This document shows positions 10,394-56,574 of a stretch of 64,000 bases of DNA, piece by piece. How positions within the stretch are numbered: position 1 is the stretch's first letter; each line of letters begins with the position of its first letter. Where the stretch lies: positions 87,315,921 through 87,379,920 of the forward strand of contig NC_092383.1 of NCBI RefSeq assembly GCF_030028105.1, written 5' to 3'. This DNA comes from Mobula birostris (taxonomy: Eukaryota). A model generated the notes under the pieces. That model saw only the letters and a list, made by a program, of their open reading frames with translations, searched no databases and was not told the origin of the DNA. Made by a program: the position numbers and the translations under genes.

Positions 10394-10714
10394 TTTCAGG
10401 TGCATTGTGGGCAGAAAAATTTGTAACACGAGTTGTGGGAAGAGCGATCACAATCGATTGTCACTATGAGGAAATGTACCGCTCACACACAAAGTATTGG
10501 TGCCATGGATGGACTCATCATTGTTCAGTTTTAGTGGAAACAAATGGGCAACATGAACGGAGTGGACGAGTGTCAATCACAGTTAACCTGGAACAGAGAA
10601 TACTTACTGTTACTATGGAGGATCTTCAGTCTGGAGATACAGGATGGTACAGCTGTGGAATTATAACACCAGATACCGATCCGAGATTTAATATACGTCT
10701 ACAAGTATCTAATG
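10394..10714 (+). CDS. Exon V1: intact Ig V domain of CD300/pIgR/TREM type, beginning with the signal-peptide tail (V)SGA
   Basis: ctccctcag|TT TCA GGT GCA TTG TGG...TCT AAT G|gtatgt; 321 nt, phase 1-1. Reads ITIDCHY...KYWCHGWTHHCSVLV...DLQSGDTGWYSCG: canonical B/F cysteines plus the family's extra C-C' cysteine pair. Confidence 0.92.
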
Positions 10715-11058
10715 GTATGTTTCTCAGGGACTGACTTTGTTCTTTCAATGAAATAAATGTCTCATCCATGTTTCCTCTGGGAAGAGTCAGTGCATTAGAC
10801 GTCCTGGGGAGTGATGATGTGCTGATCCCACGGTTAAGCTTGCTGAATGGAGAAATACCCATATCATGGAAGAACAACAATCTCCTTCTCCTCTTTGTCC
10901 TTCTGACCTTTGTCCAGACCCTGTCTATCACTCACTATTTCTACATTAATATCAATGCCAAATGTTTCCCTCTCTATGGCTGATCACTGAACCCAGTCAC
11001 AATTTCATTTTCTCCTCAAAGATATGTTACAGATATCTCACAAATTGCAGCCTTTAAG

Positions 11059-11598
11059 CACTCAGTGGCCAATTCGTTAGGTACCTCCTATACCTCATAA
11101 AGTGGCTACTGAGTATGTTCATCACCTTCTTCTGCTGTGGTCAACTTGGTTCAATGTGCGTTCAGATGCTTTTCTGCACACCACTGTCATAATGTGTGGT
11201 TATTTGAATTCTTGCCATTTTTCTGTCAGCTTCAATCAGTCTGGCCATTTTCCTCTGAATTCTCTCATTAACAAGCCATTTTTATTCACAAAATTCCTTC
11301 TCACTGGATACTTTTTGTATTAGACACCATTCTCTGCAAACTCTAGAGACTGTTGTGTGTGAAAATCCCACGATATCAACAGTTTCTGGGATACTCACAC
11401 CTCCCTGTCTGGCATCAATTATCATTCCATGGTCAAAGTCACTAAGATCACATTTCCTCGCCATTTTGATTGCTTAAACACCCACTGAATTTCTTGACTA
11501 TGTCTGCCTGCTTATATGGACTGTGTTGCTGCCATATGATAGACTTATTAGATGTTTGCATTAACGAGCAGGTGAATAAGGGGTACCTAATAAAGTGA
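11059..11598. mobile_element. Non-autonomous Tc1/mariner-derived element
   Basis: CACTCAGTGGCCAATTCGTTAGGTACC at the left and GGTACCTAATAAAGTG at the right. The minus strand encodes the remnant MARKCDLSDFDHGMIIDARQGG. A related copy starts at 39131. Confidence 0.7.
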
Positions 11599-11650
11599 TT
11601 TGATTTTTAAATGTCCATTTAGTGTCTGAATGTTGAATTCCTTTCCACAG

Positions 11651-11971
11651 AACCTGTGTCCACTCCTGTGCTTCGATATCTGTCACCAGCAAATGTGTCA
11701 CGTCTTGGGGTCTCAGTGTCAGTGTCCTATTAGTCTTCCCAGGGATCCTTTCCCATTCAGTACACTTGGTATGAAATAACCTCATCTGGGCATCCAAAGA
11801 TATCAGGCATCAGTAAACTAGGTCTGCATTGTCAATCCTTAGATATCTAACCCTATCAATATTACTGCAGTGCCTCGAATTGGCATGAAGAAAAACACAA
11901 CAGAACAGTTAATGTGACAATCTTCAACAATAGAGAGATCTGCAGATATGAGATGGAAATCAATGGCACCA
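11651..11971 (+). pseudogene. Pseudo-exon C2a (FCRL-like C2 Ig domain)
   Basis: ttccacag|AA CCT GTG TCC...GGC ACC A|gcaagt; 321 nt, collinear with C2b and C2c. B-strand Cys is TAT, stops at TAG 11731-11733 and TAA 11848-11850, donor GT changed to GC. Confidence 0.9.
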
Positions 11972-12853
11972 GCAAGTTCTAACTTCAAAGGAGGATATTT
12001 CTTTTTGTTACTCTGTTACTGCTGCTCTTATACTTCGAGTGAGGGTAAGGAATTACTGACAAACATTCAATGTGCAAAAGAGGCTGATTCATGCAAATAA
12101 TAAAAAGATATAAACAAATAATGCATAGAACATGACATGCAGAGCCCCGGAAAGTGAGTCCACTGCTGCGGATTTTGTTCAGTGCTGAGGCGAGTAAAGC
12201 CGATCCAGGAGCAGGCGGTGTAGGACCCAAGGCTCCGGCACCTCCCACCCATGGTCGTAGTGAGAAGAGAGGGAGATGGTTCAAATGTAGCGCCGTGGGA
12301 CAGGCTCGGGTGGGTGGATCGTGCTGGCACAGACTAATAGTGTTTAACGCTGGTTCATTTCCAGATCCCTTTGTAAACTTTGACAATTCTTTTCACTGTC
12401 CACCGCACTACAGTGGCATTGGCAACCTATTAACCATGACACCTACATGTTCATTACGAATTATTAATATTGATGAGAAATGACATTGGCTAACAAATAA
12501 CAGCACTGATCTCAACAAAGCACCGCTGGTGATAAAGTCTGACGTTGTCAGAACACCAACACTCCACAATCACAGTCTGACTGCTTCCACCAAGTTGATT
12601 CAGTGTCTATCCAGCTGGTTAACCATGTGATCTCACATTACAGATCAGTCTACAAAGCGAGACCTTGTCTCAGTACTTGCTAAACTCCATGTGACAAATG
12701 CTGCTGCCCTGTCTTCATCCGTCCCTTTGGTGATCTCTTCAAAAAAATCAGTCAAATTTCTTTTTGAGATGAATTTCCCATGCACAAAATCATGCTGTCT
12801 ATCCCAGACCGGATCGTGCCTTTGCAAATTCAGGTAAATCCTATCTCATAGAA

Positions 12854-14016
12854 CACGGGTCCCCAACCTTTCTGGCAACACGGACCAGTTTATTATTGAT
12901 AATATTCCTGCGGACCGGCCGACCCGGGATGGGGGGGGGGAACGGGTAAGGTTGCCAATGGACAAGACAAATACGTTGTGTTTCCCGCAAAGACTACAAT
13001 GACCATAAAGCCTTGCACGGGCACCAGTGCGCATGCGTGTACGTGCCGATTTTTTTCTACAAATCATTTTTGGCGATTCTGTTCGGTGGGGGTGGTGTTA
13101 ATCACGAACCGGAATATAGGTAATAAGTGGCTAATACACTCAATTTCGTTTCTAAAAAGGTTTATCTGACGAATTTAATATTAAACACACAGCGCATATT
13201 TTCCTCGCATGAATATAGTGATAAGTCAAATATCAGGGGAGGACAGGGGAGCTTGAAGTAAGTGCTGAACGAAATTCCAGTAGAAATTGTAGTGGCAGGT
13301 TTGATATTATCATTTAAAGAAAAATTGGATACGCATATGAACAGGAAAGGAATGGAAGGTTATGTGCTCAGTGCAGGTTGGTGGGACTAGGTGAGAGTAG
13401 CGTTCGGCTGTTTCCGTGCTGTAATTGTTATATGGTTATATAACTCACTTATAAGTCAATAGCATCATAACATTTTAAGTAACGTTTGGATATTAAACAC
13501 ACAGCACATATTTTCTCCGTATGAACATATAAAATCATTGCAACACACCAATATCGCTGAATCAGTGGGAGCCCTGGGCTTGTTTTCCTGCAACAAGACG
13601 GTCCTATTGAGGGGTGATGGGAGACAGCGATACTCGAAGGGGGTTCCTTATGTCCAGTCTATTCCGCAATTTAGTTTTCGTTGCATTCATTGCAGAGATA
13701 TGTTGGAAATGGAAGCAACGTTTTCAGTACTTTCGTGGCTATCTCAGGATATTTAGCCTTGACTTTGATCTAGAATGCCAGCAGAGATGTTATGTCAAAC
13801 ATACTTTTCAGCCCGTCGTCATTTGCAAGCTCGAGGAGTTGATCTCCTTCCCGCTCTGACATGGATGACGCGTGGGTAATGACCTCACGTGTGTTCAAGC
13901 TCAATAGTGCGTGACAGGGAATGAAGAAAGGTGCAGCTGACTCATATCGCCAAACCATATCGTTTCCTCGTGGCCCCGTAGCACATGCTTCGTGGCCCAG
14001 TGGTTGGGGACTGCTG
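12854..14016. mobile_element. Non-autonomous hAT (Charlie/Buster-type) DNA transposon
   Basis: TIRs CACGGGTCCCCAACC / GGTTGGGGACTGCTG; 8-bp TSD TCATAGAA / CCATAGAA with central TA. Absent from the paralogous intron blocks near 21570 and 25510. Confidence 0.85.
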
Positions 14017-14221
14017 CCATAGAATCACTTCACTAAGTTATCCACCACTGATCTTGTACTCACCTGCCAGGAATGGGACTGGATCAGTAACCTATTGACT
14101 CAGAAATCTGGGCAGTGACAATGATGACTCCAATGAAATAAAAATCATTACTTGTGAAGAGCTGTGAGCACGTGATGAGGGACGATGCTGTTGTCTTCTC
14201 AGTCTATGTGGAATTCAATCA

Positions 14222-15003
14222 CAGTCGGCCCTCCTTATCTGCGGGGGATTGGTTCAGAGACCCCGCGCGGATACCAAAAAATGTGGATGCTCAAGTCCCT
14301 TACTTAACCTGTCGCAGTGCGGGTGGACTTTAGGACCCAGGGCAGCACAGGATCCGCCGCCTTCAGTGTTTCTATTCCGTTGACTTATAATACCGAATAC
14401 AACGTAAATGCTATGTAAATAGTTGTATTACTGTATTGTTTAGGGAATAATGACAAGAAAAAAAGTCTCTGCATGTTCAGTACAGACGCAACCATCGTAG
14501 CTCTTCTGGGAACACTGATGCTGCCTCGGCATCAGCCGATCCCGATTCTCCCGTGATCTTTAAGTTCTTGAGTCTGTAGCACTTTACATAGCCAGCCAGC
14601 CATCCCTAGCACTAACACTTCCACCAATTTCAGCTTCTTTCTGCTTTATTGTGCGAATGCTCGATTCGTTCTTACCGACCTTATGGCCCACTTCGGAATG
14701 AAACATGCCACTTTTCAAAGGATCTAATATTTCTAATTTCTCAGCGAGAGAGAGCACTTTACGCTCCCTCTTAGCCTTTGAGGAATTGCTTTGACCACGT
14801 AATTGCTTTATAGAATATAGAACATAGAATCGTACAGCACTATTTAGGAGACAATTTTTCACAGAAACAAAGTAGCGAATGAACAAGACATGAGGCGAAC
14901 AATGCTCGAACAACGTGTGCTGGAGAGAGAACTTCCGGGTTTTCCCAATTTGCGGTTGGTTGAGTTCGCGCATGCGGAACTGGCAGATAAGGAAGGCCGA
15001 TTG
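14222..15003 (-). mobile_element. Tigger/pogo deletion derivative with a CENP-B-type HTH remnant
   Basis: TIRs CAGTCGGCCCTCCTTATC / GATAAGGAAGGCCGATTG followed by TA. Minus-strand ORF contains AKRERKVLSLAEKLEILD...VGKNESSIRTIKQKEAEI. Confidence 0.88.
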
Positions 15004-16972
15004 TATACCAATTGATCACGCGGGTAGACTCCATAGTTCACAACAACAGCTTTAAATCAAAACAGACTGTGTTCACCTCTCCTAGGGCAGGCTATCCCAA
15101 TTCCCATCCCTGCTTCATGGATCATTCACTCCCTCCCCAACCTCGAACAGTCTCTCTCTGTCCCCGTCAATGTGCTCGTAATCAACCCTCAGCACCCAGT
15201 GACCATCCACTTCCCGGCAGCCAGCCTCTCCATCTGGCCCATTCCTGGTGAGAAATTGAGCATGGAATTAGAGAGAACTTGGGACACAGCCCACACAAGA
15301 ATAGACTCTTTGGCCCACCATGTCTGAATTGACCATGATGTCATTCTATGCTAATTCCATCATATTGCATATGGTCCATATCTCTCCAATTGCTCCCTTT
15401 TCATGTCCTCGTCCAAAAACCTCTTAAATATTGTTATGATATCCCTTTCCACCAGCGGGTCTGACTGTGTGTTCCAACATTTCTGACCCTTCGAGCCATG
15501 CTGCCCAAGAATCCCCAAATTAAATCCTTGCCTAATCACAGGACAACTTGCAATTACCATTTAACCTATCAATCAGTGTGTCTTTGGAATGTGGGAGGAA
15601 ACTGGAGCACCTGGAGGAACTGGAAGAAACCCACACAGTCAAAGGGAGAATGTAAAAACTCCTTACAGACAGCGGTGAGAATTGAACCCGGGTCACTGGT
15701 ATGATAAAGTGTTGTGCTAAACAGTACACTACTATGGGGCCACTGCTGGTGAACCTCTTTACCCTCTCCTAAACCTCAACATCCTTTCTATAGTGTTACA
15801 ACCAGAACTACATATTGTTGCAAATGTCCTATCCAAATTTTTATGAAGCTACAAAATGCCTTGTTGGCTTTAGTCTCCAACATGTAGAATGAAGAAGGCA
15901 AAGGTGCTGAATGCTTTCATTACCATTATGTCCACTTGTGTTGACACTTTCAAGGAGCAATGGACTTGAACCCCAAGAACTCTCTGTACATCAATTCTAA
16001 AGGGATCCAGATATTAAATTCTAGGTGAAGTCAAACTTCCCTGGTGTATGAGGAGCATTTGAAAGCTCTGTAGAAGAATGAGGAAGGATTTCATTGAATG
16101 CTATTAGGCATTGACAAGGCCAGTGGATGTGGAGAGGATGTTTCCTACAGAGTGGACCTCTAGGACTAGAAGTATAGACTCAGAATAGAAGAACATCCCT
16201 TTAAAAGAGAGATGAAGAGGAATTTCTTTAGCCAGAGGCTGGTGAATCTGTGGAATTCATTGTCAAAGGCAGGTGTGGAGGTCAAATAATTGGGTATATT
16301 TAAAGCAGAGTTCTTGATAAAGTAGGTTCTTGATTAGTAAGGAAATCAAAGATTCCAGAGAGAAGGCAGGAAAATAGATTAAGAGGGATAATAAATCAGC
16401 CATGACTGGATGGTGGAGCAGACTCAATGGGCTGAATGGCCTAATTCTGCTCCTATATCTTCTGGTCTATGGTCTATGATCTTCCTGGTTCTCCAGTCTC
16501 AAATAATTCCTTGTTGGCTTCATATAGATCTCAAAACTAATGGGTTTCCTTCCTGCTACAGGTCACTGAAACCAATCACAATTATACTCTCCCTCAACTC
16601 ACCATTCATTTTGTATGTATCTGACAATTTCCTGCTTTCACATTATGGAGAGATTTCCAGGTCACACACAATTGCTTCCATCAAAAAGTCATACTGTTAG
16701 GTGCCAATTTAGACTGTCTCCTTGTTACTGAGCGAGATTATAACTCTGATTATCATTCTGACAGATGCTCAGTACAATCACTGCTGTCCTGAAGTGGGAG
16801 TCCTGTTGAGTTCTGGGATACTGGAAGACATGGAAATTCAGGCAGCTGTGAGAATACAGACACACAGAGAGGTAGCTGAGCTCTTAAGACTGGTGGGTCT
16901 GGGTTGAGATACAGAACTGCTAAAATCGTTATTGTCTTTGGTTTTCAGATATTCACTGATCCTTTCCCACAG

Positions 16973-17293
16973 AACCTGTATCTGTTCCTGTGCTTCGATA
17001 TCTGTCACCAACAAATGTCTCACATCTCGGGGGCTCAGTGTCAGTTTCCTGTGAGTCTCTCCAGGGATCCCTTCCCATTCAGTACTCATGGTATGAACAA
17101 ACCTCAACTGAGCATCCAAAGATCTCAGATACCAATGAACTGGCTCTACATTGTCAATCCCTCAACCGGCAGCATCATCAATATTACTGCAGTGCCTCGA
17201 ATTGGCTTGGAACAAGATCCAGTGCAATGGTTAATGTGACAGTCTTCAAAAATGGAGAGATCTGCACTTGCATGACAGAAATCAATTGCACCA
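16973..17293 (+). CDS. Exon C2b: intact FCRL-like C2 Ig domain plus a Cys-containing extension
   Basis: tttcccacag|AA CCT GTA TCT...TGC ACC A|gtaagt; 321 nt, open frame. EPVSVPVLRYLSP...SVSCESLQGSLPIQYSWYE...YYCSASNWLGTRSSAMVNVTV resembles the FCRL pattern PVSRPVL...CEALRGSPPILY...YSCEANNGLG. Confidence 0.9.
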
Positions 17294-17589
17294 GTAAGTT
17301 CTAATTTTAAGGGAAGTTACATTTCAATAATTCTTTTTGTTACTCGATTACTGCTGTTCTTAAATTTCCAGTGACAGTAAGGAATTTCTTTGCATTTTTA
17401 AATGATACACATTGCAGCCTTCATGGGGTAGAAATAAAGTGGAGTGAACAGTTAAGTCTGGCATTTCTTCTTGGAAGATTTTAAGCATCTCAAACATAGT
17501 TGGACTTGAACATCCAGACAAATTGAGAGTATTCCATTCATACTTCTGCCTTCTGCATTGAGGATGCTAGAATGGGTGTTGAGTTGTGA

Positions 17590-19430: not shown

Positions 19431-20089
19431 TTCAATTTCTTATGGTCATCACTTCCTTTCAAACTTCTTGAAAAGCCCAGGTAAATTATTGAGTGCTGAA
19501 ACTGAGTTTCAGGTTGCTGACTAAAATATCTCACTCACTTTGAGGTATGAAAAGGGAACCTATACCTTCTATTTGGATCTATGAACTGATATGAACAAAG
19601 CTGTTGCATTTCATGATTATGAAGAGGATAATAAATCTTCAAAACACGTAAAAAAACTGCAGGGATACCATTCGTAGGCAAGGAACAGGCCAGTGTTCAG
19701 CTTACTGCTCCACAGTGTTTACTCGCCTGTGCTGAACTGAGGCTGTGGCCTGGAATTAATGGGCTCCTGAATCATCTGCAGTGATGACTAGCTTAATGGC
19801 GGTGATTCACTTTTGTGAATTTCAGTTCCGAATGTTATTCATTGTTTGCATGATTTGTTTTTTATTCTGCACATTGGGTGTTTGATGGTCTTCCTATTTA
19901 ATGGGTTCCATTGGGTTTCTTTGTTTTGTGGCTGTCTGCATTAGTTGTATATAGTACACATACTTTGATAATAAATGTATTTTGAACTTTGAAATTGAAG
20001 TGTAATCTAATTGGCTGTGATTCCATAAGCTGGCACATGTATGCAATAAAACAAAATTCTGAATTTAACCTTTCAAAAGTGTGGTCCAG

Positions 20090-20780: not shown

Positions 20781-22038
20781 CTGTCTGAGTTCCATTCCAT
20801 CAGCTGTTGCATTGGCTACTTTCCTTGTCCAATGTTCAAAGTATGTGTTCCATAAACAACCTGCAGACTCATCTCCTTGCAGATGTCCGCAAAACAAAGT
20901 AACACAATAGAATCCATGATAAGCCGCAGGCAACAAAGATTCACGAACATCCAATGAGCAAAAGAGGAGGCTTTGTGCAAATTATAAAAATACGTTAACA
21001 AATAACACATAGAAGGTGAACTGCAGAGTCCCCGAAAGTGAGATCACAGTTGAGGAGTCAGTTCAGCAGTGAGCCGAGCGAAGCCAATCCAGCAGCCGAC
21101 GACATGGGACCCAGGACTCCTGCGCCTTCTGCCTGATGGTAGTAGCAAGAAGAGAGGGAGGTGGATGAACTATCCTTCCAAATTATCAATATAGGTAAGA
21201 AATGACAGTGGTTAACCAACAGCAGCATTGATCCCGATGACACATCACTGGTGATAAAATCTGATGTTGTCAGAAAACCAACACTCCACGACCACAATCT
21301 GACTCCTTCCACCAAGTTGATTCAGTATCTATCCAGCTGGTTAACCATGTGACCTCACATTACAGATCAGTCTACAATGTGAGATCTTGTCTCAGTACTT
21401 GCTAAACTCCATGTGACAAATGCTACTGCCCTGTCTTCATCAATCCCTTTGGTCATCTCTTCAATAAAACTCAGTCGTATTGTTTGAAAGACAATTTCCC
21501 ATGCACAAAATCATGTTCACCATCCCAAATCAGATCTTGGCTTTGTAAAATCAAGGTAGATTCTGTCTCACACAATTGCCTCCAGTAAGTTACCCATTAC
21601 TGACCTTATGCTCACCTGCCTGGAATGGGACTGGATCAGTAATCTATTTACTCACAAATGTGGAAACACACTGAAACATTAGTGGGCAGTAACAATGATG
21701 ACTCCAATCAAATAAAAATCATTACTTGTGAAGAGCTGTGAGCATATGATGAGGGACGATGCTGTTGTCTTCCCAGTCAATGTGGAATTCAATTATACCA
21801 GTTGTCAGTGTGGGCAGATTCTTTAGAACACAGCAACAACTTTAAATAAAACATCTTTTTTATTATGATTGTGTCCTTTTACTTTTGTGTTGTTTTTCTG
21901 CATCAGATACAGAGTAGCAATTATTTCATTATCCTTCACAACGGTGTACAGCAATCAACATGAAACAATCTAGAATCTTGAATCTTCTTGTGTAAATTTG
22001 ATTTTACCTGTCCATTTTCTGAAGATTTTCTCCCTCAG

Positions 22039-22356
22039 TTTCAGGTGCTTTATGGGCAGAAGATAAAGTAAGAGGAGTTGTGGGAAGAGCGATCACAATC
22101 GATTGACACTATGCACCAATGTACCGTTCACACACAAAGTATTTGTGCCGCATGTGGGATCGCCAATGCACGTCGTCAGTGAATACAAATGGGACAAATG
22201 AGCAGTATGGAAGAATGACAATCAGAGATAACACATCCCAGGGAATATTTACTGTTACTATGGAGAATCTTGTCTCTAATGATACAGGACATTACAGATG
22301 TGGAGTTACATCTGGCAATCATCCAGTGTTTGATGTGTATTTACAAGTATCTGATG
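22039..22356 (+). pseudogene. Pseudo-exon V2 (CD300-type V domain) with the B-strand Cys codon changed to TGA
   Basis: ctccctcag|TT TCA GGT GCT...GAT G|gtaggt; 318 nt. ATC GAT TGA at 22104-22106 where V1 and V3 have GAT TGT. The rest of the frame is open (DTGHYRCG); the conserved Trp of KYWC reads KYLC. Confidence 0.9.
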
Positions 22357-23832
22357 GTAGGTTTCTCATTGATTGACTTGACGTCTCCACCAAAATGTCT
22401 GATCAGTATTTTCTCCTGGAAGAGTCAGGGGAGCACCACTATTTTGAAGCTCTGTTGCAGTGCGAAGCTCTGTTGCAGTGCAGAGCCCTGCGGTGAGTGT
22501 GCAGGATTCGGGAAAACCCACTCACATTGCTCTCACCCAGGTTGGGGTCTAACCCACCGATGGGACACCGGTCTCCAATGGGAGGCTCAGCACATTTTCC
22601 TACACTAACACTGTTTGAAATGTCGACTTCTCAGGGGATTGCATTCAGACAAGTACTAATAATATGCTACTAACAGGCCAATGAGAAACAAGAGTAACTC
22701 ATAGTCTAAACACTTTGAAAATCATAAAAAGGGAATCAGATCCAAGATCAAAACAAACTGTGTTCAGTTCTCATAGGCTATCCCACTTCCCATCCACACT
22801 TCATAGATCAGTCACTCCATCCACACCCCGTGCTCTTTCTTGCTGTCCCTGTCGATGTGTTCCGATACTCCACCCCACAGCACCCACTTACCATTCACTT
22901 CACAGTAGCCAGATTCTCCATCTGGCCCATTCCTGGTGGGAAATAGAGCAATGGATTTTGAGAGAACCTGGGACCCAGTCCAGCACAAGAATAGACTCTT
23001 TGGCCTATCATGTGTTCACTGACCATGATATTCTAAGCTAATTCCACTTTCCTGCATATGGTCCATATCCCTCCATTCCCTCCCTTTTCATGTCCTCATC
23101 CAAAAGCCTCTTAAATATTGTTATAATATCCCTTTCCCTAACTGATCTGATTGTTTTCTCCCTGCAGTCACCACCCTGGGTGTAAAGAATCTTGTCTCAC
23201 GAAGTCCTTTAAACTTTCCCCCTATCACCTTAAAAATATGCTCACTATTAAGAAGGGTAATAAATCTGCTGTGTTTGAATGGTGGAGAAGATTCGATGGA
23301 CTGAATGGCCTCATTCTGCTCCTATGTCTGATGGTCTTATGGTCTATGGTCTTTCTGGTTCTCCAGTCTCACATGATTCCTTGTTGGCTTCATACAGATA
23401 ACAAAATGAATGGGTTCCCTTCCTGCTGCAGGTCACTGAAACAATCACAATTATACTCTCTCCCTAAAGTCACCATTTTGTCTGTATCTGACAATTTCCT
23501 GCTTTCACATTATGGAGAGTTTTCCAGGACACTCACAAATGCTTCCATTAAAAAATCATACTGTTAGGTGTCTCCTTGCTGCTGAGAGAGATTGTAATTC
23601 TGATGTTCACTCTGACACGTACTCAGTTTAATCACTGCTGTCCTGATCTGGAGACCTGCTGAGTTCTGGAATACTGGCAGACATGGAAACTCAGGCAGCT
23701 GTGAGAATACAGTGACACAGAGAGGTAGATGAGCTTCTGAAATTCTAAACTGGTGGGTCTTGGTTGAGATACAGATCTGATGAAATCTTTAGTGTTTTTG
23801 ATTTTCTGATGTTCACTGATTCTTTTTCACAG

Positions 23833-24153
23833 AACCTGTGTCTGTTCCTGTGCTTCGATATCTGTCACCAGCAAATGCCTCCCGTCTCGGGGGCTCAGGG
23901 TCAGTTTCCTGTGAGTATCTCTGGGGATCCCTTCCCATCCAGTACAGATGGTATGAAATAACCTCATCTGGGCATCCACAGATCACAGATACCAATGAAC
24001 TGGCTCTACGTTGTCAATCCTTGGACCACCAGCACCATCAATATTACTGCAGTGCCTCGAATAAATTTGGAGAAGAAATCAGTGGAACAGTTAAAATGAC
24101 AATCTTCAGCAATGGAGAGATCTGCAGTTATGTGACAGAAATTAATGGCACCA
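23833..24153 (+). CDS. Exon C2c: intact FCRL-like C2 Ig domain plus a Cys-containing extension
   Basis: tttttcacag|AA CCT GTG TCT...GGC ACC A|gtaagt; 321 nt, open frame with SVSCEY...QYRWYE...YYCSASN. Confidence 0.9.
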
Positions 24154-25971: not shown

Positions 25972-26210
25972 TTTCAGGTGCTTTATGGACAGAAGATAAA
26001 GTAAGAGGAGTTGTGGGAAGAGCGACCACAATCGATTGTCAATATGCACTATGCAGTGTGGAAGAATGACAATCAGAGATAACACATCCCAGGGAATATT
26101 TACTGTTACTATGGAGAACCTTGACTCTAATGATACAGGGCATTACAGATGTGGCATTACAACATCTGGCAAACATCAAGTGTTTGATGTGTATTTACAA
26201 GTATCTGACG
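25972..26210 (+). pseudogene. Pseudo-exon V3 with an 82-nt frameshifting internal deletion
   Basis: Same splice sites as V2 but 239 nt long. The 87 nt between GCA and CAG in V2 are replaced by 5 nt at about 26049, giving an in-frame TGA at 26067-26069. Confidence 0.88.
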
Positions 26211-26715
26211 GTAGGTTTTTTCTCATTGATTCATTTTATGTTTTGATAGAAATGTCTGATTCATATTTTCCCTGGGAAGAGTCAGGGGAGCACTGATATT
26301 CTTGTTTGGGGGATTCTCATAGAACATAGAATATAGAACAGTACAGCACAGTACAGGCCTTTCGGCCCACAATGTTGTGCCGACCCTTAAACCCTGCCTC
26401 CCATATAACCCCCACCTTAAATTCCTCCATATACCTGTCTGGTAGTCTCTTAAATTTAAGAAGTGTATCTGCCTCCACCACTGACTCAGGCAGTGCATTC
26501 CACGCACCAACCACTCTCTGAGTGAAAAACCTTCCTCTAATATCCCCCTTGAACTTCCCACCCCTTAATTTAAAGCCATGTCCTCGTGTATTGAGCAGTA
26601 GTGCCCTGGGGAAGAGGCGCTGGCTATCCACTCTATCTATTCCTCTCAATATCTTGTAAACCTCTATCATGTCTCCTCTCATCCTCCTTCTCTCCATAGA
26701 GTAAAGCCCTAGCTC

Positions 26716-29390
26716 TATCATGGTCCAGTCCGTGCACTCAGAACTCTGGGTCTTCCAGCTGTCCCTCGTTTGGGTGAGTTAATTATAGGCACCTGATTCC
26801 CATCTTGAGACTTGGAATATAAGTAGCCTTGGGGTTTGAGTGTGGGCTGCTGGTTTGTCTTGTCAGTCCCCCTTAGAGCAACCTGCTGATGGAAGGCTAG
26901 TGAAATCATTTGTGATCTCCTGACCTGGTTGGAGGACCACTGCTTCATGGAGCCTTGTTACCACTTGTTGGAGTAGTCTTTGCAGTATGGATTTGGCTGT
27001 TTCCTGGGCCAGCTGAGTGGCTGCCAGCCACTCTGAGCTAGGTAGGGATCTGGCTGTTTCTGTAGCCAGCAGAGGTTGCTGGCTGTAACTGTGACTTGGA
27101 GCTACCCTAGAGCAGAGATGGAACTGTCTGTCATTCTTTGGTGTTTGTCTCTTCTTGTCCTTGCCTCTGGAGTAAGTCAGGCTGTTTTGCTGTTGCCCTG
27201 TGGGGCGATCTGTCTTGTCCTCACTTCTATGGAGTAAGTCAGGCTGTTCTGATATTGCTCTGTGGGGGGGGGGGGGGTAGGGGGGGGTTGTGTCTTGTCT
27301 TGTCCTTGCCTCTGGGGTAAGTCAGGCTGTTTTGCTATTGCCCTGTGGGGGGACATGTCTTGTCTTTGCCTCTGTTGGATAAGTCTGGCTGTTCTGCTGT
27401 TACCTAACAGGTGGACCTGTCCCACCTTGGTGTAGAGGAGTTGAGTCCTGGTTTATCAAAGTATAAGTCCCAGCTCTGTCTATGTACTGTCCTGTCTCAT
27501 GTTGGTGTTGTGCTAATGACGAGTCCTGGCTCTTTGAAGGACGAGTCCTGGCTCTTTGAAGGACGAGTCCTGGCTCTTTGAAGGACGAGTCCTGGCTCTT
27601 TGAAGGACGAGTCCTGGCTCTTTGAAGGACGAGTCCTGGCTCTTTGAAGGACGAGTCCTGGCTCTTTGAAGGACGAGTCCTGGCTCTTTGAAGGACGAGT
27701 CCTGGCTCTTTGAAGGACGAGTCCTGGCTCTTTGAAGGACGAGTCCTGGCTCTTTGAAGGACGAGTCCTGGCTCTTTGAAGGACGAGTCCTGGCTCTTTG
27801 AAGGACGAGTCCTGGCTCTTTGAAGGACGAGTCCTGGCTCTTTGAAGGACGAGTCCTGGCTCTTTGAAGGACGAGTCCTGGCTCTTTGAAGGACGAGTCC
27901 TGGCTCTTTGAAGGACGAGTCCTGGCTCTTTGAAGGACGAGTCCTGGCTCTTTGAAGGACGAGTCCTGGCTCTTTGAAGGACGAGTCCTGGCTCTTTGAA
28001 GGACGAGTCCTGGCTCTTTGAAGGACGAGTCCTGGCTCTTTGAAGGACGAGTCCTGGCTCTTTGAAGGACGAGTCCTGGCTCTTTGAAGGACGAGTCCTG
28101 GCTCTTTGAAGGACGAGTCCTGGCTCTTTGAAGGACGAGTCCTGGCTCTTTGAAGGACGAGTCCTGGCTCTTTGAAGGACGAGTCCTGGCTCTTTGAAGG
28201 ACGAGTCCTGGCTCTTTGAAGGACGAGTCCTGGCTCTTTGAAGGACGAGTCCTGGCTCTTTGAAGGACGAGTCCTGGCTCTTTGAAGGACGAGTCCTGGC
28301 TCTTTGAAGGACGAGTCCTGGCTCTTTGAAGGACGAGTCCTGGCTCTTTGAAGGACGAGTCCTGGCTCTTTGAAGGACGAGTCCTGGCTCTTTGAAGGAC
28401 GAGTCCTGGCTCTTTGAAGGACGAGTCCTGGCTCTTTGAAGGACGAGTCCTGGCTCTTTGAAGGACGAGTCCTGGCTCTTTGAAGGACGAGTCCTGGCTC
28501 TTTGAAGGACGAGTCCTGGCTCTTTGAAGGACGAGTCCTGGCTCTTTGAAGGACGAGTCCTGGCTCTTTGAAGGACGAGTCCTGGCTCTTTGAAGGACGA
28601 GTCCTGGCTCTTTGAAGGACGAGTCCTGGCTCTTTGAAGGACGAGTCCTGGCTCTTTGAAGGACGAGTCCTGGCTCTTTGAAGGACGAGTCCTGGCTCTT
28701 TGAAGGACGAGTCCTGGCTCTTTGAAGGACGAGTCCTGGCTCTTTGAAGGACGAGTCCTGGCTCTTTGAAGGACGAGTCCTGGCTCTTTGAAGGACGAGT
28801 CCTGGCTCTTTGAAGGACGAGTCCTGGCTCTTTGAAGGACGAGTCCTGGCTCTATGTTGATGTTCAGTTCCCAGTTGGTCTCTCAGCTCCAGCCTCCAAG
28901 TTATCAGCCTTTGTATTTCAAGATGAAGGTCCTGAGCCGAGCCCTGAGAACCCAAGCCTTGAGTATCCCCAGCCTCCAAGCTCTAGACCCAAGACCCCAG
29001 CCTGCAGCCAAGTCATGTCCTTGCCTGGTTCTGGAGTCTGAGCCCAAGGCAAGACCTAGGTTCTGGGTCCCTGTCCAGTCTCGGGCTCGGAGTCCAAGCC
29101 TAGTCTTGTCTCCAAGCTCAGGCTTCTAGACCCCAGCCATGTCATGTCCTTGCCTGGTTCTGGGGTCCGAGCCAGAGGCAAGACCCAGGTTCTGGGTCCT
29201 TGTCCAGTCTCAGGCTTGGAGTCGAAGCGTTGCTTCCTAGTCCATGGTTTCTAGTCCTGGGCCCACTTTCCCTAGCCCAAGTCTGTGTTCTTGTCCCTGC
29301 TCCTGGCCTGAATCCTGTCAAGTCCTGTTCCTTGTACTTCAGTGTCTGTGTCTTGCATTTGGGTCCATTACCAGTGCCCCCAATGTGACA
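26716..29390 (+). mobile_element. Solo-LTR-like element, copy 1, carrying the expanded 22-bp array
   Basis: Termini TATCATG (TGTCATG in copy 2) ... TGTGACA; 5-bp TSD AGCTC/TGCTC. Collinear with the reverse complement of 45767-47127. Confidence 0.85.
27518..28853. repeat. Perfect minisatellite, 22-bp unit GACGAGTCCTGGCTCTTTGAAG, 60 full units plus a 16-nt partial
   Basis: First core at 27518, last at 28838; the difference is 1320 = 60 x 22. No variant units seen by eye. Confidence 0.97.
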
Positions 29391-30479
29391 TGCTCTTTTA
29401 ATCTCTGATCATAATGCATACACTCTAAACCAAGCAGCATCCTGGTAAATCTCCTCTGTTCCCTTTCCAATGCTTCCACATCCTTTCTATAGTGAGGTGA
29501 CCAGAACTGGACACAGTACTCCAAGTGTGGCCTAACCAGAGTTTTATAGAGCTGCATCATTACATCATGACTCTTAAACTCTATCCTTCGACTTATGAAA
29601 GCTAACACTCCATAAGCTTTTTTAACTACCCTATCTACCTGTGGAGCAACTTTCAGAGACCTGTGGACATATACACCCAGATCCCTCTGCTCCTCCACTC
29701 TTCCAAGTATCCTGCCATTTACTTTGTACTCTGCTTTGGAGTTCGTCCTTCCAAAGTGTACCATCTCACACTTCTCTGGGTTGAACTCCATCTGCCACTT
29801 CTCAGACCACTTCTGAATCCTATCAATGTCCCTCTGCAATCTTCAACAATCCTCTACACTATCCACAACACCACCAACCTTTGTGTCGTCTGCAAACTTG
29901 CCAACCCACCCTTCTACCCCCACATCCAGGTCGTTAATAAAAATCACGAAAAGTAGAGGTCCCAGAACAGATCCTTGTGGGACGTCACTAGTCACAATCC
30001 TCCAATCTGAATGTACTCCCTCCACCACCACCCTCTGCCTTCCGCAGGCAAGCCAATTCTGAATCCACCTGGCCAAACTTCCCTGGATCCCATGCCTTCT
30101 CTCACCCTGCCCCAGCCGCCGAGCAACAAGCAAAGCCGAGGACTCGGGGTCTTCGCCTCCGGAGATTTTGGATCACACAGCAGTGAAACAGGCATTTCAG
30201 AAGTTTTAGCAGATGTTCTTCCATGCTCTCGTTTCTGTCTCCATCAAATCAGGATTGTGCACGGCACCCTACTTGACAGATAACAGGTATCATTCACCGA
30301 AGTGGCCGCTGCACGCTGCATCGCCATCTTCTCCCTAATATTTGAAGATATATATAGGTCTATTTATTTATTTTCTTATTCATTCAGATACAGCGTGGAA
30401 TAGAACCTTCCAGCCCTTTGAACCCTGCTACCCGGCAATCCCCAGATTTAATAACAAGTTTGCCGGAACAAAAATAACA

Positions 30480-31650
30480 GGGTTGTCGTGATGGGAGATT
30501 TTAATTTTCCCAATATTAATTGGCAACTCCTGTGGGCAATGGGTTTAGATAGGGTTGAGTTTGTTAGGAGTGTTCAAGAAGGTTTCCTGACACAATATGC
30601 AGAGAAGCCTACAAGAAGAGTCTGTACTTGATCTGTTATTGGGAAATAAACCTGATCGGGTGTCAGGTCTCTCAATGGAGAGCATTTTTGGGATAGTGAT
30701 CACAATTCTATCTCCTTTACCATAGCATTGGAAAGGGATAGGAGCAGACAAGCTATGAAAGCATTTAATTGGAGTAAGGGAAAATATGGGGCTATCAGGC
30801 AAGAACTTGGAAGTATAAATTGGGAGCAGATGTTCTTGGGGAAATACACAGAAGAAATGCGGCAAACGTTCGAGGATATTTGTGTGGAGTTCTGCCTAAG
30901 TATGTTCCAATGAGACAGGGAAAAGATGTTAGGAACCACGGTGTAGAAAGGCTGTTGAAAATCTGGCTAAGAAGAAAGGTAAAGCTTACGAAAGGTTCAA
31001 AAAAGATAAAGCCGCAAGCGGAACCGAGGGTTACAATCGGTAATGATAGACATTGAGAAAATTATAATGCTACAGTAATGTTACAGCTATATAGGACCCT
31101 GGTCTGACCCCACTTGGAGTACTATGCTCAGTTCTGGTCACCTCACTATAGGAAGGATGTGGAAACCATAAAAACGGTGCAGAGAAAATTTACAAAGACG
31201 TTACCTGGATTGGGGAGCATGCCTTATGAGAATAGGTTGAGTGAACATGGACTTCTCTCTGTAGACGATGGAGGATGAATGGTGACCTTATAGAGGTGTA
31301 TAAAATGATGAGAGGCATTGATCATGCAGATAGTCAGAGGCTTTTTTTCCCCAAGGCTGAAATGGCTAAATGAGAGGACACAGTTTTGAGGTGCTTGGAA
31401 GTAGGTACAGAGAAGATGTCAGAGGGAAGTTTTTTTTTTATGCAAAGAGTGGTGAGTGCATGGAATGTGCTGCCGGTGACTGTGGTTGAGGCAGATATGA
31501 CAGGGTCTTTTAAAGGACTCCTGGATAGGTATGTGGAGCTTAGAAAAATAGGGGGCTAGGGAAATTCTAGGCAGTTTCTGGAGTAGGTTACATGGTCGGC
31601 ACAACATTGTGGGCCGAAGGGCCTGTAATGTGCTGTAGATTTCTATGTTC
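30480..31650 (+). mobile_element. Internally deleted CR1 (endonuclease fragment fused to RT C-terminus and 3' UTR)
   Basis: VVMGDFNFPNINW...SDHNSISF region joined at about 31030 to MLQLYRTLV.PHLEYYAQFWSPHYRKD; tail ending CTATGTTCTATG. Confidence 0.8.
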
Positions 31651-32742: not shown

Positions 32743-32821
32743 GGCCAATTCATTTCTGTGAAAATACTGTGACTGAATCCATGACAACTGCACAAGGGGA
32801 AGAATCTGCATCAGATAAAAT
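32743..32821 (+). CDS. Stalk exon of the receptor: (R)PIHFCENTVTESMTTAQGEESASDK(I)
   Basis: Strong polypyrimidine acceptor ttttattttcttttaacag and donor gtaaag; 79 nt, phase 1-2. It exactly bridges the phase-1 Ig exons to the phase-2 TM exon and is Ser/Thr-rich. Confidence 0.75.
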
Positions 32822-33551: not shown

Positions 33552-33643
33552 ACACACTTACATAATTGTGCTCAGTGTCATTGGGATTCTACTCGTACTT
33601 CTTGTCGTTTGTCTACTTTGCTACCTGAGGAGAAAGAACAGGG
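33552..33643 (+). CDS. Transmembrane exon: HTYIIVLSVIGILLVLLVVCLLCYLRRKNR
   Basis: ctttaccacag acceptor, G|gtaggt donor; uncharged hydrophobic stretch of about 22 aa followed by the RRKNR stop-transfer; phase 2-1. Confidence 0.88.
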
Positions 33644-34880
33644 GTAGGTTCCTTTTCCCTTCAATTATTTTTTATGTAGCAGTTAGCGTGACGATATTAC
33701 AGCTCGGGGCATTTTGGAGTTCAGAGTTCAATTCTGACGCAGTCTGTAAGGAGCCTCCACATCCTCCCCATTGAACGTGTGGGTTTTTCCAGGGTGTACC
33801 AGTTTCCTCCCACAGTCCAAAGACACACCGAGTACAGTACGTTATTTAGTCATTGTAAATTGTCCCATGTTAATCGGGTTTGTCAATTGCTGTGTCAGCG
33901 TGGACCAAAAGGACAGAAGGGCTTACTCCATGATGTTAAAGTCTATGGCGAGCCTAGTGGCCCATCAGGCCGGTGCTTATGTCAGTTTCCATGGCGTGAA
34001 GAAATTGAGAGTACGAGACTCCCCACCCCCACCCCCCCCACACCCCGAAGAGGATGCTAGTCTATCACGAGGTTCACCCCCAGCATTTGCCGGTACCCAT
34101 TTTCAGCTGGGTGGACTGGAGCAGTATGTGGTTAAGTGCCTCAATGTACCACTAAATAAATCAATAAATAAATAATCTGGTGTCCCTTAAACAGACTTTG
34201 TAAACCAGTGAAGGGAACAGTGAGTACAGTGGTTATCTATGTGTTGTTATCAGATGGGGAAATGGGGTTGATCACTGGAACATAAAGCCCCTGCAGCCTC
34301 TAACTCACTGGCTGATGGAATATAACTCACTAGCTGAATACTATAACAACTAATAATTCGACTTCTCCCCGAGATGTAGTTCCTGGCCCCTCTCTCGCCT
34401 ACAAACCAGACAACTACTTTCAGTGTAGTATTATCCCCTAGTACCTATTTGTTGTAAAGATCTGAACAAAAGGAGTGCATTCTTTTCCAAAGAGAAATTC
34501 CCTAAATAATAAATACCTGAGATATAAGCAGAAAAGTGCTAGGAACACTCAGCATGTCAGATGGCAGCTGTGGAGAGAGGATCAGCTGATCCTTCAAGGC
34601 AATGACCTTACATCAGAACTGGAAAATGTGAGCGAGAACGAGTCTTGAGGTGCAGAGAAAGAAGAGAAGGAAGCACAAAAGAGCAGGTTTCTGAGGGAGT
34701 ACAAGACAGAAAAAATGTCAGGAAAGATGATGTGTGAGGCAAAAGGTGGGTGGTAATAGGATAAATGAAGATTTAAAGATGGGCGGGCTTTGAAATTTGA
34801 TTTCTGCATGGGTGACATTATCCTCACCAGTAGCAGAGTGTACTGCTCTTGATTTTCTTTGACATTTCTCTTTTTATGGT

Positions 34881-35180
34881 GGTGTATGGCCAAGTGGTTA
34901 AAGTGTTGGACTAGCGAACTGAAGGTCGTGAGTTCGAGCCTCAGCCGAGGCAGCGTGTTGTGTCCTTGAACAAGGCACTTAACCACACAATGCTCCAGTC
35001 CACCCGGCTAAAAACTGGTACCGGCAAAATGCTGGGGGTTAACCTCGCGATACACTGGCGTCCTACCGGGGGGCGGGGGGGAGGGGTAGTCTTGTACACT
35101 CAGTCGCTTCATGCCACGGAAACCAGCATAAGCACCTCTAAGATGATGAGCCTATAAGGCTCGGGGCAGACTTTAACTTT
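34881..35180 (+). mobile_element. tRNA-derived SINE
   Basis: Pol III A box TGGCCAAGTGG (34887) and B box GAGTTCGAGCC (34930), then a non-tRNA body and TTTAACTTT tail. Confidence 0.8.
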
Positions 35181-36520: not shown

Positions 36521-36567
36521 AATGGAAGCCCAACACATCTCACAGAGAAGGCAACAATGATACCCAG
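36521..36567 (+). CDS. First cytoplasmic exon: (E)WKPNTSHREGNNDTQ
   Basis: tattttccag acceptor, CAG|gtatgg donor; 47 nt, phase 1-0, the phase needed to join TM to the ITIM exon. Confidence 0.75.
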
Positions 36568-36769
36568 GTATGGACATGAAGTATAAATTGTCTGAATGTT
36601 TCAGAATATTTAACAATTGAATTACATGGGAGTTTACAGTACATTCATCCCCACTAATCCAGTACAGTATTAATATTTTACAGAAACCTCTGAACACTCC
36701 TCTCATTGAATCCCATCAGCATATCCTTCCAGTTATTTGTCCCTTTCTGTTGGGTTTATCCAGCTTTTG

Positions 36770-37080
36770 GGCACATGGCCAAATGGTTAAGGCATTCAAC
36801 TAACGATCTGAAGGTCGTGAGTTCGAGCCCCAGCTGAGGCAGCGTGTTGTGTCTTTGAGCAAGGCACTTAATCACACATTGCTCTGGGACGACACTGGTG
36901 CCAAGCTGTATGTGTCCTAAAGCCCTTCCCTTGGACAACATCAGTGACGTGGAGAGGGGAGACTTGCAGCATGGGCAACTGCTACTCTTCCATACAGCCT
37001 TGCCCAGGCCTGTGCCCTGGAGAGTGAAGACTTTCCAGGCACAGGTTCATGGTCTTGCAAGACTAACTGATGCCTTAAAA
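36770..37080 (+). mobile_element. tRNA-derived SINE with the same head as the 34881 copy
   Basis: TGGCCAAATGG A box and GAGTTCGAGCC B box; head nearly identical to 34881-34990. Other SINE-type copies lie at about 15540, 18960, 31690, 32340, 33680, 36160, 37436 and 60480. Confidence 0.75.
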
Positions 37081-38833
37081 TTTAATCCAGCTTTTCCTTA
37101 AGTCTATCCATAATATTTTACGTAACCGTTCTTCAAAGTGGCTCCACGTCTTTTTTATTGTTACTGAAGGGTGAAAAGTGAGATTGGTCCTTTCAAAGCA
37201 ACACACACAAGATGCTGGAGGAACTCAGCTGGCGAGGTAGCACCTATGTTTATATTTTTTAAAAAAAAAAAAAAAAAAAAGTACAGTCAAGGTTTTGGGC
37301 TGATGGAATGTCTAATTATGCAAATGTCTTTGGGTTCAATGACTTTTCAGTTTACATTTTCTATATTCCCCTGAATCTCAAACTCCGATGTGAAATCAGA
37401 AAAATGAGTGCAGGTATATTCAGAATAATAAACTGGGGGAGGCACGGCAGCGTAGCGGTTAGCGGAATGCTATTAAAAAGCCAGTTACCTGGGTTTAATT
37501 CCGCCGTTGTCTGTAAAGAACTTGTATGCTTTTCCTGTGACAATGTGGGCCTCTGGGTGCTCTGCTTTCCTCCCACATTCCAAAGAGGTTAGTATGTTAA
37601 TTTGGTCACATGGGTTTAACTGGGAGATGTGGACTTGTTGGGCCAGAATGGCCTGTTTCCATGCTGTATCTCTAAATAAGTAAATATCTGTTCTGTGTGA
37701 CCTCACCCACCCACTTTCTCACTCTACCCCTCAATCCTGACACCAGTATGAATAGTCTATTGTCTCTTAGGTCTGTTATCAAGAATCTTTTTTTTTTGAT
37801 ATTTTCCAAAGACTTTGGAATGCTTGTGTATTATTACCTTAATTAGTATCCCAATTGATTTAATATTTCCCTAATTGAATAATTAGGGTCAATATTATCA
37901 AAGAGCTTCAATTATTTTCTCAATTTCGTCAGTTGTCTTTCACTTTCCCAAAGGTAACTGCAGGGTGGAGATTGTTGAAGGATTCTGCTCTGCTGTACAT
38001 TTTCCCTTGTGGGCATCACTTTCTCTCCAAGAGCTGTACCCTCAGAGGACTGTGTGTTCCTCTTGTGCATCTTCCAGTCTCTGAATCCCACCACCAATGT
38101 CAGTAGCTTCAGTTGCCCAAAACCTACACACTAGACAAATCCCACAAATCCATGAACTCCTGCAATTCTGTCCTCTTAACTTTTGTTCGTTCGAGATACA
38201 GCAGAGTAACCGGTCCTTCTGGCCCATGAGCCACCTAATTACACCCATGTGATCAATTAACCTCCTATGACAAACGATTCTGACTGTAAACCCTAAAAGT
38301 ATTGCAGTTTGCGAAAATAATTCCCAAGTTCATTTTCAACCTCTTCTCTCGCTAAACCCCTGTGAAACACCTAGGACCAGTTTAGTGTGTTGGTGTTGTA
38401 AAGCAACATGCCAATGTTGTACATTTAGTAGCGGATCCTCTCTAAGGATCCCTGCCACTGAGCCATAAGCTGTTATCAAACATTATGGAAAATTATATTC
38501 TACAAGTCGATTGAAAGGATCAGGGTTTATTTAAAGAGAGAAAACCGAGGGTGATCTGATAGATGTCTGCAAGATGTTGCCACTTACAGATGAGAGTAGA
38601 ACTGGAGGTATAAACATAAGATGGCTAATAAAAACAAAAAAAATCCAAGAACTTAAGACCATAGGAGCAGAATTAGGCAATTTGGCCCATCAAGACTGCT
38701 CCATCCTTCAATCATGGCTGATTTACTTTCCCTCTCTCCTCATTATCCTGCCTTCTTCCCAATAACTTTCACACCCTCTCCCTTTGCATTCATCAGTCAT
38801 AAAATAGATCATGGAATTTATTTTTTATTTCAG

Positions 38834-38887
38834 GAAATGGCCACGTTGGAAGAAAATGTCACTTATATAAATCTACTCCACGTTTGA
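38834..38887 (+). CDS. Terminal cytoplasmic exon: EMATLEENVTYINLLHV* with ITIM VTYINL; the ancestral frame continues to TAG 39041-39043
   Basis: ttttttatttcag acceptor, phase 0. TGA at 38885-38887 is followed in the same frame by NKAAQLTTNENGIVYADVKFK...NVTDTDIKFQTQCTKPK*. Confidence 0.8.
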   Translation, partial: EMATLEENVTYINLLHV

Positions 38888-40960
38888 AACAAAGCTGCCC
38901 AATTGACTACCAATGAAAATGGTATTGTGTATGCAGATGTGAAATTTAAAGTGAAATCAAGTGCAGTCCACTTCGTTATTGATGGGAACAATGTAACCGA
39001 TACAGATATCAAATTTCAAACACAATGCACAAAGCCAAAATAGAAAGCTTTCTCTCCTGCTACTGCAGAGAACTCAGAATAAGCTTGATAAAGAAATTAT
39101 GTGGATTGATTAAGGCAGAAGAGTTATATGCAGTGGCCACTTTATTAGGTACACCAGTACACCTGCTTGTTAATGCAAATACCTAATCTGCCAATCATGT
39201 GGCAGCAACTCGATACTTAAAAGCATGCGTGTTGGCCTGTTGTGCACTGAGAATGGTTCTTCTGCAGCCACTGTTGTAATGTGTGGTTATTTGAGTTACT
39301 GTCACTTTCCTGTCAGCTTGAACCAGTCTGACCATTGTCCACTAATGGACCTCTTTCTTTTCTGATCCTTCAGTTCTTCTGGAAGTCAGGAATGATGAGC
39401 AGAATTAATTCTAACGATCATTTATTTTGGAGTGCAAACAAATATACAAATGCTAAGCAAACTAAATAAGGAGCTGAAAAATGGTGCAAGGAGCTAAATG
39501 AATGGCAAAGAATGTGAAAACAAAATTGTGGCACCTCTGGAAAAAATCCATTATTTTTTATAGTGAAGATAAGGAAAGTTCCTTCGATAGAAATAAACTA
39601 GCTAATAGGCTACATAATTAAAACAATTACCTCATGAGTAATGTGCTAATATTTAGCCAATGAAAAATGAGGAAGCTGATAAACCATTAGTTTAATTGCT
39701 ATACCGCTTTCTGCCAGTCAGTGGCGACAAGCCAGCACATACGGTGAAAAATACATGAGTTTACTAAAAAGTACAAATCATATGAAAAGTATTATTTTTA
39801 AAAAGTCATGGTTTCCCACACCTCTGACTTCTCTCATTAACAAGGCATTGCATGCACAGAACTGCTACTCACTGGGTGAGACAACAGATTAATGCTGATG
39901 TTAAATTGTACTTAACGATGGCTTCAGGATACAATCAAGGGAGCCATTAAGTGGCTGTCTCCTGTATTAATGCAGCAGTGAGGACACCTTCAAAAGGCTA
40001 CAACCATCATTAAGAACCCCCTTCACCTGGAACATGCCCTCTCCTCATTGTTACCATCAAGAAGGAGGTGTAGGAGCCTGAAGACACACACTCAACATTT
40101 TAGAAACCGCTTCTTCCCCTCCACCATCAGATATCTAAATGGACTCTGATCCCATACACACAACTTCCTCTTTTTTTGCATTTGTTATTTAATATATTTT
40201 ACACACACACACCACACATACCTTTCTTTTTCATGACATAGGGCGGTGATATTAATTCTGATTCTGATTTCTTGCATTCAGTCCTCATCTCTCTAAGCCC
40301 TGCCCCTCCATATACCTATCCAAGTGCTTCTTAAATGGAACTTTTGTGCCTGCCTCAATCACTTTCTTGGGAAGATGCCATGACTCCAACCGATGCTGCC
40401 TTGTAGCTACACCCACTAATGGGTCAGGCCTGGGGACTGTCTGGAGCTGGTGTCCCTCTGGCAGTCCTACGTTGAGTTCAATGCTGATTGGCAACTCCTG
40501 TGATACCACTGGTGCAAAACTGTACCTGTCTCTGCCCTTTCTTTTCAGTCATCGGCTGTGGAGAGAGCAGGAGCCTGTTAGATGGGCAACAGCTTGCTCT
40601 CCATATTGTACTGGCTTTTTTTTAATCATATAGACACCTGGGACACAACATCTATGGTTGACATCTTGTGATGTTTTGTATTGTAAATTTCTGGAGACTT
40701 ACATAAATATTGCTGTGTTGCCTAATTTTGTAGATATTACTGTTGGTGCAATATATATCCTGTTCACGATCCATACAATTTCCATTTCCTCTTTTAATCC
40801 AGCATATTTCTGGTGTTTTTCCATTATTGACCTGTGTATGCTGTTTGTCATCGGAATGGCTTTATCTACTAATTAATTTGTTCTTGCTTGTTTATCCTGC
40901 AATATTACATCTGGATTGTTATTATGGATTGTCCTATCTGTAAAAATGGCTCAGTCATAA

Positions 40961-56570: not shown

Positions 56571-56574
56571 AGGT

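Follow-up and report, generated by a model that had tools for sequence, protein, structure and literature searches.

The locus and its exons

The 64,000 nucleotides (nt) of Mobula birostris DNA analysed here (assembly GCF_030028105.1, contig NC_092383.1, positions 87,315,921 to 87,379,920 of the forward strand; "the window" in what follows, numbered from its first letter) carry a receptor gene of the cartilaginous-fish MDIR family. Half of its immunoglobulin (Ig) exons are dead and its cytoplasmic tail is cut short by a stop codon, and we lean, on the weight of the sequence, toward reading it as a pseudogene. Exons were sought by tblastn of exon peptides against the window, and their borders come from DNA alignments and from reading of the splice sites; the stalk, transmembrane (TM), cytoplasmic and tail exons were located through homology to ray proteins. 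The exons, all on the + strand, are these:

9874-9913, +, leader exon, from its ATG, encoding MLWTLILLTGFLP; phase 1 exit, donor GTGAGT
10394-10714, +, V1, an intact pIgR/CD300-type V exon of the V_A type; 321 nt, phase 1-1, four cysteines
11651-11971, +, C2a, a dead C2 exon
16973-17293, +, C2b, an intact FCRL5-type C2 exon of the C2_A type; 321 nt, phase 1-1
22039-22356, +, V2, a V_B-type exon interrupted by a TGA; splice sites intact
23833-24153, +, C2c, a C2 exon with an open reading frame, drifting
25972-26210, +, V3, a V_B-type exon of 239 nt; splice sites intact
32743-32821, +, stalk exon, PIHFCENTVTESMTTAQGEESASDK; phase 1 in, phase 2 out; 89% identity to the stalk of P0153
33552-33643, +, TM exon, YIIVLSVIGILLVLLVVCLLCYL followed by RRKNR; 83-87% identity to the TM of P0154 and P0185
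36521-36567, +, short cytoplasmic exon of 47 nt, EWKPNTSHREGNNDTQ; 81% identity to P0154
38834-38887, +, open part of the tail exon, EMATLEENVTYINLLHV followed by TGA; one immunoreceptor tyrosine-based inhibitory motif (ITIM), VTYINL
38888-39043, +, relic of the tail past the premature stop, in frame; aligned to the tails of P0013 and P0154

All of the Ig exons are of phase 1-1 and, V3 excepted, each is 318-321 nt long. The upstream acceptor ccctcag/TTTCAG (the slash marks the border) is the correct one, recreating the "...GT-ISGALW..." and "...LP-VSGALW..." junctions of annotated homologues. A strict signal-peptide scan upstream of V1 returned nothing, and the leader was placed afterwards by homology: over its 13 residues it matches the leaders of the M. 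birostris paralogues P0174 and P0164 at 100% identity. The hydrophobic core of the TM segment, YIIVLSVIGILLVLLVVCLLCYL, has no charged residue.

Between the modules, the + strand from 9.8 to 39 kb has no additional exon for a leader, TM or tail, and the single leader, TM and tail set therefore defines one transcription unit. An initial annotation of this DNA had likewise seen only one stalk, TM and cytoplasmic set, and had named as its own refutation a division into separate genes with their own leaders and TM exons, of which the + strand offers no sign. It had also run the gene to 39043; the open tail stops at 38887.

Within the TM-to-cytoplasmic intron, on the minus strand at 34745-34867, there is what is left of an MDIR tail exon, with KSRAVHSATGEDNVTHAEIKFQS as part of it (51-70% identity to the tails of P0154, P0013 and P0153); its ITIM tyrosine has become histidine. 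It sits between inverted repeats at 33935-34141 and 34973-35177.

Domain identities and family

Compared with solved structures, V1 finds pIgR D1 (E 6e-44) and CD300 (CD300f, E 1e-16), and it shares the extra C-C' cysteine pair that is typical of pIgR and CD300; C2b finds FCRL5 (E 7e-31). These mammalian proteins are the closest solved structures for the two domains, which does not imply orthology. Pfam identifies the Ig exons as V-set and Ig_3, with C2c scoring 20.8 bits for Ig_3, under the cut-off of 30. Trees of the domains group V1 with the V_A domains, place V2 and V3 in a V_B clade (Shimodaira-Hasegawa-like approximate likelihood ratio test, SH-aLRT, 98), and set all three C2 exons within the myliobatiform C2_A clade (SH-aLRT 96). 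V2 is 94% identical to domain 3 of P0185. In mammals, pIgR/CD300-type V domains and FCRL-type C2 domains reside in separate genes; the Mobula gene mixes both kinds. As the initial annotation had proposed, this is a single gene of inhibitory type, judged by its uncharged TM and its ITIM.

Relatives were collected by scanning 1.8 billion representatives with V1 in HMMER and by a word-indexed search with a close homologue, P0013. The matches are elasmobranch proteins named "polymeric immunoglobulin receptor-like" or "Fc receptor-like 5", and they include MDIR2, MDIR3 and MDIR5 of the clearnose skate; RefSeq labels the MDIR-family proteins of elasmobranchs "pIgR-like" or "FCRL5-like". The MDIRs, or modular domain immune-type receptors, are receptors of the skate Rostroraja eglanteria (Cannon et al. 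2006 Immunogenetics 58:362, as cited in PMC3031540). A model of 424 amino acids (aa) that joins the open exons of the window gene, as described below, is 63% identical to MDIR2 over the V-C2 part (aa 2-219, E 7e-93), 63% identical to MDIR3 over 217 aa (E 1e-88) and 59% identical to MDIR5 (E 3e-85). Across C2, stalk, TM and tail its identity to MDIR2 and MDIR3 is 44-45%, and to the ray paralogues P0013 and P0154 the model is 72-75% identical. P0013, for its part, is 56% identical to MDIR3 over 98% of its length. The gene thus belongs to the MDIR family by similarity, by Ig domains that are each encoded in one exon, and by an uncharged TM combined with an ITIM; the earlier guess that it would prove MDIR-like, and not the founder of a new family, was right.

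Like skate MDIR2, MDIR3 and MDIR5, the Mobula gene has an ectodomain that alternates pIgR/CD300-like V domains with C2 domains resembling FcR homologues, and its layout of stalk, TM and ITIM-like tail matches that of MDIR2 and MDIR3. It differs from the skate receptors in coming from a myliobatiform ray, in having three of six Ig exons dead and one module without its V, and in retaining one ITIM in the tail. Domain parsing of 42 relatives from Mobula, Hemitrygon, Hypanus, Pristis, skates, sharks and a chimaera shows V and C2 alternating over two to eight domains. P0153 has eight, P0154-P0158, P0163, P0166 and P0167 have six or seven, and skate MDIR3 has five. With many-domain, alternating relatives so common, the mixing of V and C2 and the multiplication of the cassette within a gene are traits of the family and not of this locus, and the expanded ectodomain that had been singled out as unusual is nothing of the kind.

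The nearest intact designs are those of Mobula hypostoma P0154 (948 aa), which reads V_A-(C2_A-V_B)x2-C2_B-stalk-TM followed by a three-motif tail and so has the C2_A-V_B unit in common with the M. birostris gene, and of P0153 (LOC134355435, 1025 aa). Stalk, TM, cytoplasmic exon and tail of these two are 63-89% identical to the window. They are intact paralogues, not orthologues, their Ig exons being 71-84% identical to those of the window, and they carry a membrane-proximal C2_B of which the window has no trace.

The repeat and its age

The Ig exons stand in the order V-C2-C2-V-C2-V. The repeat unit is a C2_A followed by a V_B, three times over, behind the single V_A (V1), and the order departs from strict alternation because a deletion of ~0.9 kb took out the V exon of module 1. 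Thus, three V and three C2 exons in homologous introns, as first described, are indeed there; their regular interleaving is not. Two features of the introns bear on this arrangement:

14220-15064, where module 1 has lost its V_B exon: a pogo-like insertion and, next to it, the ~0.9 kb deletion, by comparison with module 2 at 21854-22746
26317-31600, transposon cluster in the intron after V3: reverse transcriptase (RT) fragments and a tandem array, with no trace of an additional C2 exon

Homology between modules 1 and 2 reaches to 14219, is interrupted by the insertion, resumes for 60 nt and then skips the equivalent of 21854-22746, the segment that holds the V exon. The insertion (14220-15003) is pogo/Tigger-like, with a CENP-B_N match on a minus-strand open reading frame (ORF) at 14584-14970, and directly adjoins the deletion. 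Neither a fourth C2 exon (of the C2_B type) nor more of the pre-C2 intron homology was found between V3 and the stalk.

Self-comparison shows the introns that flank the Ig exons to be homologous at 73-88% identity. C2b and C2c are 84.7% identical in their exons and 84.5-85.6% in their flanking introns; for V2 and V3 the corresponding values are 93.6% and 88.7%. The V1 and V2 exons are 73% identical, and C2a is 79-81% identical to C2b and C2c. Overall, the module copies differ by 12-27% across exons and introns, each with different transposon insertions, which makes them old duplicates and excludes an assembly artefact.

The tandem array of the post-V3 cluster (27518-28853) is a perfect 22-nt repeat, GACGAGTCCTGGCTCTTTGAAG, in ~61 copies with 100% matches; its flanks recur, diverged and inverted, at 45.8-47.1 kb.

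Lesions

Three of the six Ig exons (C2a, V2 and V3) are dead. C2a has stop codons at 11731 (TAG) and 11848 (TAA), its first Ig cysteine has become tyrosine, and its donor has changed from GT to GC, so that the exon may be skipped. V2 carries one TGA, at 22104-22106, exactly at the codon of the first Ig cysteine. V3 has an internal deletion of 79 nt that shifts the frame. In the tail, a TGA at 38885-38887 comes after the first of three ancestral ITIMs. Past that stop the relic remains in frame for 52 codons; it has kept the second ITIM (IVYADV), and the third has lost its tyrosine (VTDTDI). The corresponding tail motifs of intact relatives are IVYADL, IVYANV and VTYADI.

Recoding of the V2 TGA as selenocysteine was considered and rejected: the whole window contains no selenocysteine insertion sequence (SECIS), nor any other Rfam family.

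When all exons are spliced in, the first stop is reached at codon 148, and when C2a alone is skipped, at codon 250. The only open path runs leader-V1-C2b-C2c-stalk-TM-cytoplasmic-tail and encodes 424 aa, or shorter subsets of this. The lesions in C2a, V2 and V3 therefore mean that a four-module ectodomain cannot be encoded. The initial annotation had seen here a receptor built from about four tandem V-C2 modules, a reading that the stop at codon 148 and the death of half of the Ig exons overturn. That such a receptor nevertheless works is extremely improbable: intact relatives with six to eight domains show the design to be viable, but inclusion of any one of C2a, V2 and V3 brings a premature stop or a frameshift, the window offers no SECIS or recoding element, and the assembly would have to be wrong at four or more separate sites.

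The acceptors and donors of V2 and V3 are still consensus. Default splicing should therefore include both exons and yield transcripts with premature stops. There is, then, no open frame through the constitutively spliced exons, such as a coding gene would have.

Selection on the surviving exons

How well the open exons have been kept was examined through conserved columns (those at least 90% conserved), with 34 annotated C2_A domains as the comparison set for C2. V1 departs from 3 of its 44 conserved columns, inside the range of annotated domains. Among the C2 exons, by contrast with a maximum of 7 departures in the 34 annotated domains, C2a departs at 12 of 66 columns, C2b at 8 of 66 and C2c at 9 of 66; C2b has also gained two new cysteines in its linker. 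V2 is near consensus, with 2 departures in 50 columns, just one of them besides the stop. End branches in the trees run from 0.023 for V2 through 0.33 for C2c to 0.46 for C2a, the longest. The ratio of nonsynonymous to synonymous divergence (dN/dS) between C2b and C2c is 1.39, and an omega of 0.5 or less is rejected (p=0.003). Exon divergence equal to that of the introns, this dN/dS, the column departures and the low Ig_3 score of C2c together suggest relaxed constraint on the nominally intact C2 exons. Signs of purifying selection are not lacking, however: C2b and C2c are free of stops and indels, and V2 and V3 are more alike in their exons (93.6%) than in their introns (88.7%).

Status of the gene

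In our judgement this haplotype carries, on balance, a gene for an inhibitory receptor that has recently become a pseudogene; loss of function is what the pattern of lesions and relaxed constraint suggests. The ancestor had a leader, V_A, three tandem C2_A-V_B units, a stalk, a TM without charge and three ITIM-like motifs in its tail, which is the design of the intact paralogues with six to eight domains. The lesions fall into an order of age. The oldest are the deletion of the module-1 V_B and the death of C2a, with its two stops and lost GT donor; the 79-nt deletion in V3 is intermediate; and the TGA of V2 and the TGA after the first ITIM of the tail are recent. Decay was thus stepwise, and the simplest history is that an inhibitory MDIR gene with seven Ig exons lost modules while still in use and later took two recent nonsense hits, a mark of relaxed selection across the whole gene. 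By homology, the ancestral product, or any product that survives, would be a type I membrane receptor whose ITIM tyrosines recruit SH2-domain (SHP) phosphatases.

Annotation offers a further hint. None of the 243 retrieved proteins matches any exon of the locus at >92%. Between the two annotated Mobula genomes, orthologous domains do not differ at all, and a coding model for the locus therefore seems to be missing. This would be a weak sign of a pseudogene. Several points count against inactivation. Leader, V1, C2b, C2c, stalk, TM and cytoplasmic exon, seven in all, are open, with the right phases and consensus splice sites, and they join into the clean 424-aa ORF, which keeps one ITIM. C2a, having no GT donor, is perhaps skipped anyway. 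No indel separates the three C2 exons, where the introns predict about three per pair. If C2b and C2c had evolved neutrally since they split, the probability that both would be free of stops is ~0.12, that they would be free of indels ~0.05, and jointly ~0.006; survival in this state being so improbable under neutrality, selection probably acted over much of the history of the pair. The near-consensus V2 and the in-frame relic of the tail likewise speak for past or remaining function. Lastly, two pairs of annotated isoforms, P0196/P0035 in M. hypostoma and P0202/P0223 in M. birostris, differ by exactly one V_B exon of 107 aa, so that skipping of V_B has an annotated precedent in Mobula paralogues.

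It is possible, then, though we hold it only tentatively, that the gene still functions in a downsized form, with its dead exons skipped to leave a 424-aa V1-C2b-C2c receptor whose TM is uncharged and whose one ITIM, VTYINL, would recruit SHP-type phosphatases. The shared 1-1 phase of the Ig exons keeps any subset of them in frame, the change of the C2a donor to GC and the absence of indels from the C2 exons count in favour of such a receptor, and V1 is conserved to a normal degree. There are also annotated Mobula proteins of this form: P0035 ("FCRL5 isoform X3") and P0223 ("FCRL2 isoform X3") show the V-C2-C2 ectodomain to which exon skipping would lead in the window gene, are made from V-C2-V-C2 genes by leaving out exactly the V_B exon, and are 59% identical to the 424-aa model. 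They differ from it in that their TM is of the activating type and bears a charged residue and in that they lack an ITIM tail, and their V_B exon is intact and optional. In the window gene, on the other hand, the splice sites of V2 and V3 are consensus and the sequence holds nothing that would force their skipping. The dN/dS of C2b and C2c and their excess of column departures fit drift equally well, the tail has lost two of its three ITIM-like motifs, and no coding model of the locus turned up.

Inactivation might also be confined to part of the population or to the assembly. The V2 stop, and perhaps that of the tail, would then be a null allele peculiar to this haplotype, or else an erroneous base, and the normal gene would read V1-C2b-V2-C2c with a three-motif tail; V-C2-V-C2 is a common MDIR build. 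Each of the two stops takes a change of one base, the tail relic keeps its frame beyond the stop, and V2, with its short end branch and single other departure, is otherwise the most consensus-like exon. We nevertheless consider this unlikely, for V3, which lacks 79 nt and has good splice sites, would even so have to be skipped, the tyrosine of the third ITIM is lost as well, and substitution errors are rare in modern assemblies. That the modules are separate small V-C2 genes, or the repeat an artefact of assembly, is hardly credible: nothing was found in favour of either, the + strand lacks extra leader, TM or tail exons between modules, and copies so divergent in exons and introns, with differing transposon insertions, are old duplicates and not collapsed or duplicated reads.

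Among elasmobranch MDIR receptors a V/C2 layout of many modules is normal. If the gene is indeed a pseudogene, the window holds an inhibitory paralogue in decay, which gene prediction ought to mark as a pseudogene or as a model of low quality. Beyond annotation its importance would be slight. What wider interest there is, and it is modest, lies in a dated series of exon losses that illustrates birth-and-death turnover, and possibly in the buffering of exon death by cassette skipping. On that last theme, all three V_B exons are dead or deleted, and V_A and two C2 exons survive, a pattern that might represent evolution of domain number through exon death, an idea that we regard as speculative and rather doubtful. 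Were it true, optional splicing of V_B, which is a cassette in two Mobula paralogues, may shield V_B exons from selection, and multi-module MDIR genes could shrink to a constitutive, still expressed V-C2-C2 receptor with a single ITIM.

Other features of the window

Downstream of the gene, the window is dense in retroelements from 40000 to 59500, where ORFs for the RT and endonuclease of a long interspersed nuclear element (LINE) occupy 41-44.7 kb, ORFs resembling those of L1 follow at 50.5-56 kb, and gag-like ones lie at 57-59.5 kb. Matches to the C-termini of the RefSeq proteins P0182 and P0223, at 3.7, 40 and 50.5 kb, were rejected as derived from transposons; since the C-terminal ends of these two proteins match retroelements, those ends look like transposon-derived mis-annotations. 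Further along on the + strand, 60262-60457 is 80-88% identical to the N-terminus of the Hypanus protein P0026 ("A33 antigen-like isoform X2"), and 61180-61215 encodes a leader-like peptide, MWILVLFICSLP; together they probably represent the 5' end of the MDIR gene that follows.

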